Source: Marsupella aquatica (taxonomy: Eukaryota > Plantae > Marchantiophyta). From it: a DNA stretch of 64,000 nt. The position numbers and the translations under genes were made by a program. The notes below the pieces were generated by a model. That model saw only the letters and a list, made by a program, of their open reading frames with translations, ran no database searches and was not told where the DNA came from. The first letter of the stretch is position 1; every line of letters starts with the position of its first letter. Shown here in pieces: positions 10,666 to 62,237 of the stretch. The stretch lies in contig OZ316898.1 in assembly GCA_973895155.1 (NCBI GenBank), positions 4,761,079 to 4,825,078 on the forward strand, given 5' to 3'.

Positions 10666-12430
10666 TCAAGGCGGGCCTATTGCATTAAACAAGTCAAGTA
10701 ACTGCAAGGTCTGCACAACATTCGAGAGAGGTCCTCAGTTTGCAATTATATATAAAAATGTAGAGCAGGAAAATAGGAAGTCAATAAGCAGCAAACTACC
10801 GAAGGCTAATAAGATTCGATCACACGAGTTGCGAGTCCGAAGTGAAACTGCAGAACTTAATGAGTAGTCACGTATCTTTCCTCTTTGAGGAGACTACCGG
10901 ACAACCTTACCTCTGGAACAGACAGTTGAAGACGAAATTTCGGGCCGTCATAATGATGAAGAATGGGCCTGAAGGCTTCCTCTTGTAAGGGCTTGCAGAG
11001 TCTCCGAACTCGGATTCGAACCTGGACGCAGAGCTCATGTTAGCTTGGTATCCACCGGAGGTGAGCGCTAGAATAAGGTCAAGAGAAGTCAACTGGGTTT
11101 CGCTGGTACGAGCATCAACCTTTCTACTATATTAAATCTCCTTATCTGTATGACAGGTTCATTCTAACCCAGGAACGTGCTCATTGAAAATTTGGAGATT
11201 CTTAAGATTGTGTCAAGAAAGCCTAAGGATGGTCTTCCCATAAAGATCGGAAAGAAAGAGGTAGAGAAGGGTCATGATTCTCGCGATGAGGAGAATTTCG
11301 ACGTACCTGAGCTGGAAATCTCGACTCGCCTCGGCATTTCTTGTCTTCCCACGCAGTCGGGTCTATATTCGAACCTCCAAAACTAGAAGCCTGACAAGTA
11401 CCGACGTTGCAACATCAGTATGCTACCAGAGTGAAGTATGAATACTATCTCTTTAAAAGCCAGCATACGAAGGTGAGATGAGCAATCGACATGCAGTACC
11501 TCAAAAATCCCATGTAGCTGATGTGTTGTATAATTGTACAAAAACAATGGAAGCCCAGGCTGAATTGCGCGGACCGAGTCGCGATATCTCTGCGGAAGAC
11601 CTGCATTAAAAGGCAGGAGTTGGTCAGCTGACAGGAACTTAATTGAAAGTACTGTACAGATTCAATAAACAATTAACGACAAGTGGGGATTCCCGCAATC
11701 ACGGCCTGGAATCTCCGTGCCGCGTACACAGAATTGATGCAGGTGACCCAACGCAGATGCCATCCGTGAAACAAGGCTAAACAGAAGGAAAGTGCACATA
11801 GACTTTCGGGATTTCTACTCATGCTGCACGGCCGAGCGCCATCAAACACGCAACGCGGGAAACCAAGCAATGTCTTCAAGAAGAAGTTCGAGGTCAGCAT
11901 TCTGAGGCAAATGTCGGAACCCTGTTGTGGCAATATGGACGAGACCGGCGTAGGCGGTAACGAGTTGAAATGACAATGCACGTACCGAAGAGTTGGCGCT
12001 TGAGGTCTTCTTGCATTGTATCGTTGTTGCAAACGAAAATGTATCCACCGAGAGTTTCGTGGCGTGGGAGCATTTCTGCGGGGGGAAGGGATTTGAAGCG
12101 CTTGTCGTGATTGCCGGTCAATTGAAAAGGGGCGTTCCCATTGAAAACACCCGTCATCGACCCTCCTTGCTGCTGCTGCTGCTGCTTCTGTTCCGACAAT
12201 GTTACCTTCTTCTCCGTAGGCGGTGATTGTTTCGATCCGCCACTTCCACTTTTCCTCTCTCCCCCGTGCCGCTTTTTGGCCTCGGTTGCCCCCTTCGATC
12301 CTCGGTCCAAAAATCCTCTTTGCTCGTCGAAAGGAAAGGGAAGATTGGGGGGAGCTGGGGCCCAATTCTGATCTCCCGGGGTGCCCCCAAAATCCTCCCC
12401 GAAGGACCAGAGAGAATATGGACTCGCCAG
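10666..12430 (-). CDS. DCD (development and cell death) domain protein, NRP/B2-like; ~261 aa if initiated at CTG 12430
   Basis: Exons 12430-11986, 11600-11500, 11390-11307, 11021-10911, 10710-10666 (786 nt). Translation includes DKRFKSLPPAEMLPRHETLGGYIFVCNNDTMQEDLKRQLFGLPQRYRDSVRAIQPGLPLFLYNYTTHQLHGIFEASSFGGSNIDPTAWEDKKCRGESRFPAQVRIRVRR...HHYDGPKFRLQLSVPETLQLLDLF. The start is uncertain: CTG 12430 or the first ATG at 12157. Confidence 0.95.
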
Positions 12431-15327
12431 TGGTCCTGAGTGATTAATTCCCTTACCAAGATATTAAATAAAAGCTGTTGTTTTACACCAAACCCTCCTC
12501 TTGCGCTCTTCTTCGTGACGACTATGATGAAACTATTTCTATGAGATTGAGGAACGAAGGTCAGCCCTGGAAAAGCTGAGGACTTGTCTGCTTTTGTTGG
12601 TATAATATTCATTTAAAACTTACACATAGAGGGCCACAGCCTGCCTGCAATCGTTCCGAAATATTTCACAGACACCGATGCGTCCGACCTACGTCTTCTG
12701 ACTTTGTCACACGTAAGCCTGTATGTCGATCTACTTGCACTGCACACCTCGCGATTGCGGACGTCGTCTTTCGTCCCGGTAGTAACTGAAGTCTGTAGTC
12801 CAACCTGTGCTAATGGCGATTGACCGTTCCTAAAATCGCCGTTTGATTGCCCACCAGTCTGCCCATGCCCGTACTGCTCAATGAAATAAGAACAGTAAGA
12901 TTACCAAGCTCGACTAATCCAAGTGTCTTGAGTGAGAATGATGAGCTCCTTCCGACACCAAATCACACGTCGTGAAGGACAGTCCTCCAAAGCTAGTGTA
13001 GTCCTTGGTCGGTCACAATGTTAAGATACTGACACCGCTGCCGTAAGAAAAGTTTCTTTCCGAAAGCCCAGACAGACCATAAAATGACGTGCCTTCAGGA
13101 TCGCGAAGGAAAATAAAGGCTAGTTTTGTTCACCATACAAAGCTGCATTCGAAACCATAAAAAAAGCGCTAAAGAAACCTGCAACGCAAAGAACGACGGT
13201 ATGTCAATCTGGGGCCGAGAAACTAACTCTGAAACATCGAGAGGGAACCAAATGTATGAAGAATACTGACACTTTCATAATGCTGTAAACCCTGGCAGGA
13301 AACGAACAGAGGAAGCGATAAAACATCCCGGGAGTGAAACAATAAACCACACCTGGTGACACGAGAAGCTTAGAAACTCTAAAATTCTGTCAGTCGACAG
13401 AAAAATGTCACAGCAGAAGACAAAATGCACATTACGAAGAGCGAGGGGAATGGAAGAAAAGGTGCCGCTTTACCGAGCTGGAGGTGAGAACACAGCGGTG
13501 AACAAGAAAAGTGTAGAGCGACCCGAAAGACAGAAGATGAACGCGGGTCAAGTGCGACAGAAGAACAACTTTGCGAGACGTAAGGAGAAAGGAAATGAGG
13601 TACAGAACTTCGGTCACAAGGTCACAGAGGCGTTGCACGAAAGTAAGAAGGATCTAGAAAAAAATTAAAAAGTAAGAACGGAAATTAGAGGCTCCTCGGT
13701 GCATACACTAGATGGAGTTCCCGACGTATTAAAAATCAGAAAAGAAATCCCAGATCCAGACTTGTAACAGATCTCAATGACAGTGGTGAGAGCGAAGGAA
13801 AACTGAGGCACATAGAGAAATGCCTGCGGGCAAGTAGGAGGAAAGGAGGGAACAAGAGGAGCCGCCAAATGTTCCACAGTAGCGATAACCCCTAGCGTCC
13901 TTGGCGCATGCTTTGAGCCGCCGCAATAGCAAACCGAAGTGGTGAAAGCAATGAAGATATCGTTCTATCCACCATGCAACACTGCGAGACCACCGACGAC
14001 ACTCACTTCTATCCTATCCTTTCCTTGCCTCCTCTATGCTTCCTTGTTAAAGTTCGTTTGCTAGTATCCGTCTTCGCTTGCATGGCTGTCATTCAGAGCA
14101 TGATACTCACTGTTTCATGAATACAGGATTTGCTGATCACGTAATCTTCCGTAAACTTCACAGAAAAAGTAACATCATGCGCTCTATCTCTGCCCCGCTC
14201 CTGGCCGCTTCGATCTGTTCGAACCTGCTTGCCTGCCACTCCCCGCTCCGCTGAACAAATCGAAGCTCTACTCCTTTCCGCCCCTTCCTTTCTCGTTCCC
14301 TTTCCTTGCTTTTCCTTCAGTGTCTCGTTCGGCCGTTCCACCGCTTTCTAACTCTGCTCGGCTGCCTGATTACTTGCTTGCGACTCCAGCTCTAAGGCGC
14401 ACCTACCGACTCGATCAACCAACACAGCTCCCTGGAACTTTCCGACCACACTCGCCAAACTTACTTCGCAGATACACCTCCTCGTCCTTCCGTTCCTTCC
14501 TTTCCTTCCACGATTTTCGACGACTCCCTGCGAAACGGAGCTCTGGCAGCGAATCCAACCTTTCAAAGTAAGTCGTCCACGGCGTCCTGTTCCCTCTCGT
14601 CTCGACGAGAATCCGTGCTTTCAAAGTCGTCCACGGCGTCCTGTCACCTCTCCTCCCGACGCCGATCTCCCTCGTCTCGCGCAGCGTTCTTCCCTGCTAC
14701 GACTCGCTCTACTCGGCTCCCACTTCGATTGTGATTCACATCGCTCTCTGTGCAAGTTTCGTGCAAGCGATTTTCCTTCTTCGCTTCGCTTCGCTTCGCT
14801 TCACTTCACTTCGCTCGATCGTTAGCTTCGTTCGCGAGGTAGCCTGTTCTTCGCGCTTCCTGTTTCGCAATAAACACTCACACTCCTTTTTCTGCTTGTT
14901 TGCTTTCTTCTTCTTCTCTTGGTGCCAGGCAGGCAGGCTGCCCACAATTTATTGTATACTATGGCAGCGACACACTGTTCGGTCCCTCCTCCTTGTCGTC
15001 TACTGTTGTACTGTAGAACTGCGCTGTGCCACTTCGCCTCCCCCCCCCCCTCCCTTTCCCTTTGACCTGCCCTGCCTCGCCTCTTCACCCGGTTCGAGCA
15101 ATCAATAAAAAAAACATATACATTAATTTATCAAATATCATTTTCAACCCTAGACAGAAACACTTTTCTCATGATCGACAGGGTATGAGAATATTCCCTG
15201 TTCTCATGATTCGACAGGGTACAATTAGGGTCCATCTGAATTGCAAAAATTCATGAGAACATTTTAAAAAACCTATAAGTCTATCCGGGTTCCCATAGAC
15301 CCTAGACAGAATACACATTATAAGCCT

Positions 15328-28399: not shown

Positions 28400-31320
28400 T
28401 TTTTTTCTTCCCCCCCCCCCCTTCAAGGAGAAATTTACTTAGGAGACAAGTAAAACCCAGTAAAAAACAGGAGTAAATCTGCCAGGCAACATGCAATGAA
28501 AGACCAAGTCACCCTGAGCCAAGACACATCCAGACCCGGGGACAGGGGTAAAACCAGGCCCGTGATCAAAGAGGTTTGGTCACAAAAGCTAAACTGTTGC
28601 AAATGCCCTCTCCTTAATATTGTACACTATATTTTGCCGAATCATATGCGCAGAAAAAAGATTTGGAGGCAATTTTGGGCCCCCACCACAAAGCTGCACT
28701 GGAAGTTCAGCCAATAAAGATCATGAGCAAAAAGTAAACAAGGCCATTACTCGCCCTAAAACAGGACTAACAAATGAAACAGCAAATCTAAGGGCAAACT
28801 CAACCTGCGTTACTCACCCTAAAAAAGGACTAACAAATGAAACCGCAAATCTGAGGGCAAACTCAACCCTGAAACTACGGTGAGAGAACCAGCGGGAGCC
28901 AAGAAGTGAGCATGTGAAAACAAGATGAAAATCCATAATGATTCAATCATGTGCACGAGAAAGAACAACTACTACTTCTACAACACAAGGCCACACCACA
29001 AATGAATGTGAAGCCAAGTGAACCAGATCAGAATGAATTCATGGAGGATGAAAAATCCACAGTGGTTGAACATCTACCACGAAGTTATCATCACAAATCT
29101 TGCATAAACTAACATTACGTCCACAATCTCTTGTCATCTGACCAAACTACTCTTGTTTATCTCTTCCTGACTCCAAAATATGTGCATAACCACGAATCCA
29201 GGCCATCCTCATGTATAGAGTCCGAAGCTCCGACCAAATTTTGCTTTTAATCCCAACCACAAAAATCTTCAACTCTTCCTTCTCCAAGGAGCAATGAGCT
29301 TTCCAAATCTGCCAGATGGTGATCTCACGAACAATGTGCCAGAGCTTAAGTGGAATGCCCAACTGACTTCCCGAAAGTGGAGCCCCCAAAATCGTAGTAA
29401 CAACCAAGAAATGAAATTGAAATATGCCAACTCCAGCAATTTGCATGATCAACCCAATCCATAGCAAAAGAAGATCTAGTTCAGGACAGGCCAAGACAAT
29501 GCATAATATCTTCATGTGCCTGCTGATCACATCTTTGGCACCACCAGACCTCATCCAATTGGGAAAAGGGAATAATGAGCCCATTCTCATCTATCCTTTG
29601 CAATCTCTGATCAATGTAATGTTTAGTGGCAAAAGAACGGTGAGCAATTTGCCATAGATCTTTTCCTCCCGAAATGATTTCCATATATGACCCCAAATCA
29701 CCCTATCCCTGGGGACACCCCTCATATCCATTCTCCACTTCAACTTCTCCCCTATTTCAACCGGCTTTTGATGTTGTAGCATCCTATGTAAGCTCTCAGT
29801 AGAAGAGTGAAATCTATTTGACTCCAAAGCCCGCTCCAAAGTAACCGACGGTTTCAACACACCAATCTCCATCTTGTGAGACAACCAATTTTTGGTTCGA
29901 CCAATGACTTCCTGAATAGTCTATTACCCAAAATTGGAAGAGGATCAATTTTCTGAAGAATTCCTTGTTGAATTTCAAACGCATGTAATCACCTGCTTCC
30001 CCTGAACCTCCTACATCTCCCAGCTTCCTTCACTAAACTGTTTGGGATCCAAATTTCCCACACCTGGTTCCCATCCAGAATAGGAACATGAGAAATCACA
30101 ATCATCTTAGCACTATCAGGGTACCCCATAGGAACAAATGGAAACTTGGAATTATCCACCACCGATTGAAGCAATTGCTTATATCTTAAATTAAGGAGCA
30201 TTACCAACAATCAAATCCCATTCTCTAGGCACATTGGCATCCTCAAAAATACCCCCCCCCCCCCCAAGAAGTAAGAACCTGACTACTCAGATTTCTACGA
30301 GGGACTGTATTACATCCAACCATGCTAGAATCGACATGATTGGTCTATGGTGACCGCAGAGGCTGGACCAAAACCAAACCCAAGTTCTCAGGCACCAAAA
30401 ATTCCAGATGAAGTTTCAATCTGTTCAACGAGCGGCAGATATTCCTCCATACAACTGAACCATCAGACCGCAATTGAAGCGGATATGTACCACTCCTCAT
30501 AGAAAACTGAATTAGCCTAGCAGCAAGAGCCGTAACCAGATCCTCAAAAGATATTAATCCAATCCCTCCTTCCGGCTTGTGTAGTGACAAAATCCTGAAA
30601 TTGATTCCATGTCTAGCCAAAATCTCCTGACCACTCCATAAGAACTCAATAAGCACCATCTTAATTGCATGTAAATCGGTATTAGAGCCACCCCATAGAG
30701 TAAGAATATACCAAAGTGATCCCATCAAAACATGATTGATAACCAGAACTCTGGTCATGAAAGGATGCGGCCTAAGTTTTACTTGAGTCAGCTTCTTATC
30801 CAACAAGCACCTAATTTGCTCCAAGCAGCCACCCAAATGAATCCCCTCTGCTCCAAAAAGGAATCCCAACAATTTAGAGTAGTTGTTAATCGATTCCCAT
30901 TGCCATCCTAGATTCAGCAACTCCCCAGGGATCAAATCCCTACTGAGTAAAATGGCACTAGTGGAGCTCCAATGACACTTCAAACCAGATGCTGTAGCAA
31001 GCACATCAAAGAATAGTTTACAATTAACTATATTCATATGTTCTCCCTTCAGCATGATCATTTTATTATCAGCTTATAACTGATGTGTCAAGTCAATACC
31101 CTCAATTTCAAACCGAACTCCTTCCAGCCTCCTTGTGTCTAATTGTTCAGTTAATAGACAATCCAGCCCCTTATGGCTAAAATGAAAATTAGGGGAGAAT
31201 TATGACACCCCTGCCTAACAGATATTGTGACTTTAAATGCAAAAGTAACATGACCATTCAGCATGATAGCTGATGAAGCATTGCTAGTGAGAGCTCGAAA
31301 GAACTCAATAAATCATGAAA
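28400..31320 (-). mobile_element. Degenerate 5'-truncated LINE (L1-like ORF2: RT plus zf-RVT-type C-terminus)
   Basis: The minus strand encodes VRQGC..SP (RT), a HQL*AD relic of YADD, KLLGFLFG, LSLHKPEGGIGL and IWQIWKAHC, with stops and frameshifts. The 3' UTR ends at a T/C-rich tract near 28400. An internal 62-bp duplication lies at ~28748-28870. Confidence 0.9.
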
Positions 31321-45389: not shown

Positions 45390-46772
45390 TCAAAGCTCAA
45401 TAGAACATACGAAAGGATCTCTAATATCAAGAGTAAGAGAACAAACTGCTTTCTCCCACTCAATCTCTTTCCTCTCGCTTCCAAACCCTTTGCTCTGAAG
45501 AAGAGCATCCCCAGTTGCAAAACTCTCCAAGTCCCTGGTGTACCAATACGCAGACAATAGTAGCTCGCCGTTTGCAACTAATATTGACATCGGCTTGATT
45601 TCAACAGAGGCCAACTCTTCTATCGAAGCAAACGAATTTGAATGCAGACTTGTCCATACATTTCGATCAATATCGTGAACATCAATGCCATCACAAGTTA
45701 TCCGGTGAAGCTTCCCTTGAGCCATGAAAACTAGGGTTGAGCTTGTGGGAATCACAAAAGGTTCGACCAAGTCCCACTCATCGTCCATTGGACGATATAT
45801 CTCCAAGAACGCTGCATCATATACGGGTTCACCAGGTATTGTGCCGAGCTCCAGAATTGGATGTTCATACCCGTCGAGGAAAAGTGGATCGTAAAACATT
45901 CCGCCGTATACGACTAACTGCTCTCCAACTGTTGCAACCTGATGCCCAAATCGCCATGAGATCATGGGCGTTACTGGCGACCATGCGTCTTTGTGAGGAT
46001 CGTAAACTTCGGACCCGTAGACAGGATAGCCACTTAACGTCCCCCCGAAAACATAAATTTTTCCATCTATGACACCACAAGCAAATTCATGCCGTTCCTC
46101 TTGCATGCTGGCACACTGTTTCCACTCACTCTGTCCCGCCAAATCCAATACATATACTTCTGTACTGGCAGCGAAAAGACAGTTTTTCTTCAATACATCT
46201 CGCACAGCACCAACAGCATAAATTTTACTACCCAATGAAATCCAACGACCACGACCACGTCCGGGCCAAAGATTGACACCTGGGATCGGCGGAAGTTGAT
46301 AACAAGAGTGATCTCTCGTGGAGAAGAGCTCAGCAGTAATTTCGCTATCCCATGAAGGTCTATGATGAAGTACAAGTAGTGTCTCTGTTGAGTGAGAGTG
46401 GACTCTCGCATCATGGACTTGGTGACTTTCAATAGCTTGCTTCCAGCCCCGACTTACTAACGCCAAGATGTGAAGCACTCTCCATGACAACTTTGGAGCA
46501 ATCTTGTCAAAGGTAATCTCGTTGGGAAGCCCCGGAAGGAGTTGCTCATTCAGTTCCTCAAATCTGGATCTCTTGTTGGTCTTTCTTTCTACGGCCACTC
46601 TCTGCACTCCAGACGACTCTCCTCCTGTCCTGTCGTTCGGCAAGCCTACTGTCTCCGTGTTCTGTCCCGGATCTTCTCCAATCCTGTTCTGGCTAATCTC
46701 AATTCCATGCCGAAAAGTCTCACGAGAAACTTTATCTCCGTATCGCCAAAACGATCTGTTCGGCTCTGCCAT
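45390..46772 (-). CDS. F-box/kelch-repeat protein, intronless, 460 aa
   Basis: Uninterrupted ATG-initiated ORF. F-box-like LLPGLPNEITFDKIAPKL..VSRGWK; kelch motifs MQEERHEFACGVIDGKIYVFGG, SEVYDPHKDAW and RFGHQVATVGEQLVVYGG. Confidence 0.92.
   Translation of the reverse strand: MAEPNRSFWRYGDKVSRETFRHGIEISQNRIGEDPGQNTETVGLPNDRTGGESSGVQRVAVERKTNKRSRFEELNEQLLPGLPNEITFDKIAPKLSWRVLHILALVSRGWKQAIESHQVHDARVHSHSTETLLVLHHRPSWDSEITAELFSTRDHSCYQLPPIPGVNLWPGRGRGRWISLGSKIYAVGAVRDVLKKNCLFAASTEVYVLDLAGQSEWKQCASMQEERHEFACGVIDGKIYVFGGTLSGYPVYGSEVYDPHKDAWSPVTPMISWRFGHQVATVGEQLVVYGGMFYDPLFLDGYEHPILELGTIPGEPVYDAAFLEIYRPMDDEWDLVEPFVIPTSSTLVFMAQGKLHRITCDGIDVHDIDRNVWTSLHSNSFASIEELASVEIKPMSILVANGELLLSAYWYTRDLESFATGDALLQSKGFGSERKEIEWEKAVCSLTLDIRDPFVCSIEL

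Positions 46773-54228: not shown

Positions 54229-62237
<8,009 letters not shown>

Follow-up and report, generated by a model that had tools for sequence, protein, structure and literature searches.

Where does translation begin in a gene whose reading frame stays open well upstream of its first AUG? This question is raised by a DCD/NRP gene in a 64,000-nucleotide (nt) stretch of DNA from the leafy liverwort Marsupella aquatica (assembly GCA_973895155.1, contig OZ316898.1, positions 4,761,079 to 4,825,078), hereinafter the window. Judged by its protein relatives, it is an NRP-type DCD protein gene of five exons on the minus strand, the strand of all coordinates given for it below. Its first in-frame ATG (12155..12157), which begins the peptide MTGVFNGN, lies in a weak context (tcgATGa) and is codon 92 of a frame that is open back to a CTG at 12428..12430 (context ccaCTGGC). 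An in-frame TAA (12464..12466) closes the frame 12 codons upstream of the CTG. No in-frame ATG is found between this TAA and the CTG, and the 273 nt from CTG 12430 to ATG 12157 contain zero ATGs in all frames. An initial annotation of this DNA had described the open frame, the ATG-free interval and the weak context in the same way, and had proposed that the CTG starts a 261-amino-acid (aa) protein by near-cognate initiation while leaky scanning to the ATG yields a 170-aa DCD-only form; exon mapping reproduces both lengths. The comparative evidence strongly supports the first start, and the CUG at 12430 quite probably initiates the full-length 261-aa protein. Specifically, because the CTG is conserved, the interval downstream of it is under selection and the mRNAs of relatives offer no AUG, we strongly infer initiation at the CUG.

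The CTG occupies the position of the initiator Met of vascular-plant NRP proteins, as the initial annotation had placed it. In BLASTP, the Leu encoded by the CTG of the window falls opposite M1 of a Ginkgo NRP; 14 of 33 residues are identical, and the E value is 4e-7 for this single comparison. M-x-x-x-[YHF]-S-F-W opens all the lycophyte, fern, gymnosperm and angiosperm proteins, the bryophyte counterpart reads L-A-S-x-Y-S-[LF]-W, and the motif x-A-x-P-Y-S-[FL]-W extends into all vascular-plant N-termini. The proteins of Physcomitrium patens and Ceratodon purpureus also have L at the CTG position.

Orthologues were compared for CTG or ATG at this codon in 12 bryophyte loci. Five are liverwort-type, namely the window, its close relatives L002 (a transcript from a JGI sample) and L007 (a genomic contig), the Riccia-like transcript L001, and the named Riccia sorocarpa (L012, GCA_046195345.1). 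Two are Sphagnum-type transcripts (L010 and L004), and five belong to two Bryopsida types: Physcomitrium-type L005 and L008/L009, the latter being two independent assemblies of one moss transcript, and Ceratodon-type L006, L011 and L003. Hornworts, Takakia and Haplomitrium lie outside this sample. The protein P0011 of the L010 group is identical to that of Sphagnum tenellum over the DCD domain. In all 12 loci, CTG is kept and precedes GCG, or GCT in a single case, with AG after it; C at −3, G at +4 and C at +5 show no variation. A scan of metagenome contigs with the N-terminal alignment gave no confirmed locus, and a profile search of 1.84 billion representatives returned seven matches and nothing new; callers of proteins rarely take in the N-terminal region.

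The conservation of the CTG exceeds that of other leucine codons in the same proteins. Codon usage was compared in eleven loci, with the CTGs of L012 and L007 read separately. The five invariant Leu positions of the DCD block use two to five codons each, CTG accounts for only 4 of the 55 codons at these positions, and 14 of 14 invariant residues of four- or sixfold degeneracy use at least two codons. The control leucine codons drift and the CTG does not; in liverworts and mosses alike, what is constrained in this codon is its nucleotide sequence and not the leucine for which it stands. A 12-nt stretch directly 5’ of the CUG (12431..12442) is conserved as well, with the consensus yAyTCrGnACCr in the 12-locus alignment. 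A weak consensus stem covers columns 15–40 of alignment A2 (window 12391-12431), in which the CUG pairs with a downstream CUGG at −4.4 kcal/mol, and one pair covaries, −1 (A/G) with its partner (T/C) in 9 of 11 sequences. A hairpin 3’ of the CUG is not retained from one species to the next, and the stem is not relied on here.

The interval between CTG and ATG evolves as coding sequence in the CTG frame. It encodes a 90-residue N-terminal extension (12158..12427) with the motifs ASPYSLWSFGEDFGG and DQNW. In this frame, the ratio of nonsynonymous to synonymous substitution rates (dN/dS) is 0.16–0.26 when the window, L002 and L007 are compared with one another and 0.42 in the comparison with L001; when these columns are read in either of the other frames, it is about 1–2. 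Consistently, most of the differences among the window and its two close relatives are at third codon positions (for instance 6, 2 and 15 by codon position). The stretch 12430-12158, for which the initial annotation had named lack of conservation as the outcome that would speak against it, is therefore conserved, and this frame-specific pattern shows an N-terminal extension that is, to judge from its evolution, translated and under selection. The long open +1 frame 3’ of the CUG was dropped as evidence because it is expected from the amino-acid sequence.

No source of an upstream AUG is apparent in the mRNAs of relatives. In spliced transcripts of six taxa (L001, L002, L003, L004 and L008/L009), an in-frame stop lies 5–34 codons 5’ of the CTG and no ATG follows it; every relative has such a stop with no ATG in between, except the moss loci L006 and L011. 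Coding introns are removed from the transcripts, and the leaders are collinear with genomic DNA in the three pairs compared (L001 with Riccia, L002 with the window at 12576..11985, and L008 with L005). Thus an upstream exon supplying an in-frame AUG, which the initial annotation had considered, is not seen in the leaders of relatives. In L008/L009, the first in-frame ATG is codon 175, 11–12 residues into the DCD domain, and a functional protein there therefore needs a non-AUG start. In L004, AAG is the sole near-cognate codon besides the CTG after the stop; of the near-cognate starts in plants, AAG is the poorest and CUG ranks with the most efficient (PMC7605272).

The leader contains two conserved upstream AUGs, at 12627 and 12612, which the scanning model of the initial annotation had left out. 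The first opens a tiny upstream open reading frame (uORF) of four codons, uORF1 (12613..12627; ATG TGT AAG TTT TAA), whose stop abuts the next AUG. The second opens uORF2 (12202..12612), AUG-initiated, 136 codons long and in frame +1, which overlaps the CUG start and ends 45 nt before AUG 12157. In the window, L007 and the Sphagnum-type L010, nothing separates this TAA from the ATG; L001 and Riccia have a variant tiny-uORF arrangement with a spacer. The uORF2 motif TTTTAAATGAA and the +1 frame are kept in five loci, with the uORF2 AUG at −182 from the CUG in the window, −185 in L001, −197 in L007, −179 in L010 and −215 in Riccia. In L010 and Riccia, the uORF2 TGA overlaps the downstream ATG (ATGA). 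The Physcomitrium-type mosses have a different AUG uORF well 5’ of the CUG (L008:696-839, L009:137-280, L005:649-807), 78–93 codons long and about 80% identical over its first 48 residues.

The selected reading frame appears to change at the CUG. In the 146 nt before it, all gaps among the window, L007 and L002 are multiples of three, and dN/dS is 0.31–0.55 in the uORF2 frame versus 1.7–2.4 in the main frame (three close relatives, small counts). Because the frame preference before the CUG differs from that after it, the selected frame appears to switch at the CUG, and the simplest reading of these substitution patterns is two separate translation events. At greater distance, the uORF2 peptide is poorly conserved. 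A splice from 12627 to 12436, which would make an AUG-stop, finds no support: L007 does not keep its donor, and the transcripts L001 and L002 run unspliced through this part.

Several observations weigh against initiation at the CUG. Position −3 is C in every locus, not the favoured purine. Four codons directly ahead of the CTG and in its frame, for [HY]-S-x-P, are unusually conserved, with mostly synonymous variation, and could mean that translation starts further upstream. In the Ceratodon-type loci L006 (2928-2993) and L011 (559-627), an in-frame ATG lies 22–23 codons 5’ of the CTG, preceded by TAA and beginning M-[VI]-K-R-E; the CTG is kept regardless, and this ATG may start a secondary AUG-initiated extension. 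In the third Ceratodon-type locus (L003:2193-2410), the CUG frame ends after 72 codons and the DCD open reading frame (ORF) goes on in another frame, which could reflect an assembly error or a decaying paralogue. The transcript evidence consists of mRNAs of relatives, of which the closest, L002, has 98% amino-acid identity over the aligned part. Finally, the upstream AUGs, one of which opens an ORF that overlaps the CUG, should reduce the scanning flux that reaches the CUG, and uORF2 must shape any scanning model.

In the main rival reading, splicing supplies the AUG: with the conserved CACTCAG just before the CTG as its 3’ end, a leader intron would join the ORF of AUG 12612 to the main frame. 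The motif does resemble a 3’ splice site after an AT-rich stretch, frame-fusing GT..AG pairs exist (for example −58..−6 and −103..−6 in the window), the upstream ORF evolves in a coding-like manner, and the P. patens model fuses its own upstream ORF, of which the first 48 residues are conserved. However, transcripts L001, L002 and L010 are unspliced at this place, L001, L002 and L008 are collinear with genomes, and L003, L004 and L008/L009 have no AG there. The candidate donors are weak, and enumeration of GT..AG pairs gave many chance candidates and no convincing conserved pair. Indels of 3n persist through the would-be intron, and the remainder of the P. patens extension carries stops in L008. 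Among the matches listed from 5.8 billion proteins, no entry that covers the region has a conserved splice of an AUG exon to PLAS, and what lies upstream in these matches either follows genomic DNA without a break or, for the Riccia models, resembles none of the others. We therefore regard a frame-fusing splice as improbable.

The conserved codons before the CTG and their mostly synonymous variation bear on a second alternative, that another in-frame near-cognate codon 5’ of the CTG, such as AUU at −18, starts the extension and the CTG is an internal Leu codon kept for other reasons. ATT or ATA is present at −18 in the window, L002, L007 and L001. No such codon is conserved, however; none occurs at −18 in Riccia, and AAG is all that L004 offers between its stop and the CTG. 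Moreover, an upstream near-cognate start leaves unexplained both why the CTG does not drift to other Leu codons and why it stands at the vascular-plant Met position. Its chance of being correct is as small as that of the splice.

Less probable still, and in our view very unlikely, is that AUG 12157 alone is used, with the upstream frame an untranslated relic and a 170-aa DCD-only protein as the product. AUG 12157 is the first in-frame AUG, the model of the alga Spirogloea muscicola begins at the same place, and ORF callers give 170–174-aa products from bryophyte transcripts. Against this stand the frame-specific purifying selection across 90 codons, the N-terminal motif conserved since the split from vascular plants, and the Physcomitrium-type moss transcript that has no such AUG. 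A sequencing error, or an ATG mutated in this one genome, is negligible as an explanation of the CTG and is refuted by 11 further loci that carry the same CTG independently, drawn from various species and sources of data.

With initiation at the CUG as the preferred reading, the downstream AUG would be a second start. In favour of such a start, liverworts and the Sphagnum-type and Ceratodon-type mosses retain the Met of MTGVFNGN; vascular plants, with their AUG upstream, do not. In S. muscicola, the annotated start of P0035 (MMTGVYNG) lies at the position of the bryophyte downstream ATG, which suggests, as far as one algal model can be compared, an ancestral DCD-only form to which land plants added the N-terminal extension. 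The ATG-free corridor looked striking as evidence for leaky scanning, but it is expected from the amino-acid sequence: resampling of synonymous codons in four liverwort loci gives zero out-of-frame ATGs with P of 0.16–0.49, and the corridor does not exceed chance in these loci. Ceratodon-type and Physcomitrium-type mosses have three to six ATGs inside the CTG-to-ATG interval, and Physcomitrium-type mosses have no downstream in-frame ATG. Thus, of the two isoforms first proposed, the CUG-started 261-aa protein is supported and the DCD-only form made by leaky scanning is not. A functional 170-aa form made in this way is plausible in the sense that the data permit it, and for liverworts we hold a DCD-only isoform to be possible, with the odds slightly against it.

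These features can be arranged into a model of start-site selection. Scanning 40S subunits would pass two weak-context upstream AUGs, first that of the tiny uORF and then that of the abutting uORF2. A fraction of the subunits would initiate at the CUG (+4 G, +5 C), which occupies the position of the vascular-plant AUG initiator and, by the general rule for near-cognate codons, would be decoded as Met by initiator tRNA. Subunits that miss the CUG, or that end uORF2 45 nt 5’ of AUG 12157, may start at that AUG and make the 170-aa DCD-only protein; this is the least supported step. A more speculative extension, which we think doubtful, is that the leader is an ancient three-tier start-site selector, in which the tiny uORF lets ribosomes bypass uORF2, and eIF1/eIF5 stringency or ternary-complex supply picks between the full-length protein from the CUG and the DCD-only protein from the ancestral algal AUG. 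Such a selector would have been kept since the liverwort–moss split and replaced by a plain AUG in vascular plants. If this is true, it would tie the output of a cell-death regulator to stress.

Mapped from the CTG, the coding sequence comprises 12430..11986, 11600..11500, 11390..11307, 11021..10911 and 10710..10666. The remainder of coding exon 1 after the ATG (11986..12154), which contains the linker and the start of the DCD domain, was located by tblastn of P0001 and ends at a GT donor at 11985. Exons 2 (11500..11600), 3 (11307..11390) and 4 (10911..11021) continue the DCD domain, and exon 5 (10666..10710) ends with TGA at 10668-10666. Exon 2 is supported by its splice sites and its match to PF10539 (Dev_Cell_Death), exon 3 by a tblastn match and splice sites, exon 4 by a tblastn match of 95% identity, and exon 5 by a tblastn match and an AG acceptor. 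The exons were searched one by one, and natural transcripts of relatives stand in for the joined window protein. Exon 2 on its own scores 39.4 bits against PF10539 (cut-off 27.8), so the DCD domain is recognised; exon 4, at 20.6 bits, does not reach this threshold. L001, an orthologous transcript, matches the profile over its full length with 143 bits. In a tree, the gene clusters with Riccia sorocarpa and L001, apart from mosses. Together with a Kelch gene elsewhere in the window, whose best named relative belongs to a leafy liverwort, this placement assigns the DNA to a leafy (Jungermanniopsida-type) liverwort and not to Sphagnum. The predicted protein has the NRP/B2-type architecture of the Ginkgo, lycophyte, fern and angiosperm proteins, namely an N-terminal x-A-x-P-Y-S-F-W-x-F-G, a variable linker and a C-terminal DCD domain. 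By its kinship with vascular-plant NRPs, it would be a stress and cell-death gene.

The initial annotation had expected standard gene finders to truncate this gene, and its public annotations do go wrong. The N-terminal extensions in the models of Riccia sorocarpa, R. fluitans and P. patens are unrelated to one another, and the Ceratodon and Sphagnum tenellum entries are marked partial. In the R. sorocarpa model R1sor_024145 (L012:3001-3207 and 3895, from CM100800.1), exon 1 comes from far upstream and joins 24 nt 5’ of the CTG, across the conserved uORFs. Neither R. fluitans nor L001 has anything corresponding to this exon, which is therefore probably an artefact of annotation. In the P. patens model A0A2K1IEE2 (417 aa), the conserved upstream ORF supplies the first 48 residues and is fused to the main ORF; the rest of the extension has stops in L008. 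Given a CUG start, the public models of Riccia, Physcomitrium, Ceratodon and Sphagnum would therefore be truncated, partial or provided with invented N-termini.

The bryophyte proteins share with the angiosperm NRP/B2 DCD proteins (AtNRP, soybean NRP-A/B and carrot B2; PF10539) the order of N-terminal motif, C-terminal DCD domain and C-terminal tail. Unlike in the angiosperm proteins, the middle region is not Asn-rich, and the codon that is AUG in angiosperms is CUG in the bryophyte orthologues. Non-AUG starts of main ORFs are, to our knowledge, few in plants and almost never documented outside angiosperms. The nuclear gene FCA of Arabidopsis has a main ORF that starts at CUG, as tested experimentally by Simpson et al. 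(2010) according to the account in PMC7605272. As far as that account describes FCA, its full-length protein likewise needs a CUG 5’ of the first AUG, a start deduced from conserved coding sequence there; FCA belongs to another gene family and was tested by experiment, whereas the bryophyte start is proposed from sequence comparison. In addition, the bryophyte NRP CUG stands where another plant lineage still has AUG. Conserved non-AUG N-terminal extensions of human genes have been found by comparative genomics and rest on the same signs: conservation specific to one frame 5’ of the AUG in the annotation, a stop in that frame, and a near-cognate codon that is itself conserved (PMC3105428). The present case differs in its plant lineage and in that one moss lacks a usable downstream AUG, so that a non-AUG start is obligatory there. 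Liverwort–moss phylogenetic distance lets us infer that the CUG start has been kept on the order of 400 million years.

In its arrangement, the leader also resembles known regulatory systems. In ATF4, uORF2 overlaps the main start, and the longer uORF of the bryophyte leader likewise overlaps the main start out of frame. Plant AdoMetDC has a tiny/small uORF pair, in which a uORF of 3–6 codons abuts the AUG of a longer uORF, as it does here (PMC2811004). Different from both systems, the main start of the bryophyte NRP gene is a CUG, and uORF2 is long (127–169 codons) with a moderately conserved peptide. A literature search found no paper linking DCD/NRP genes to non-AUG initiation, which is not proof that such a link is unpublished. 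Comparative data by themselves make a strong case for a CUG start across liverworts and mosses, and they flag a class of annotation error in bryophyte genomes. Marchantia and Physcomitrium offer a tractable system for how start-codon stringency and uORFs set the dose or isoform of a stress and cell-death regulator.

Elsewhere in the window, two ORFs at 30345-31061 (minus strand, 238 aa) and 54408-55367 (plus strand, 319 aa) have no Pfam match. An intronless gene at 45393-46772 (minus strand) encodes a 460-aa Kelch-repeat protein. Its best named relative is from the leafy liverwort Calypogeia fissa, with 73% identity, and more than 30 C. fissa paralogues are among the matches.
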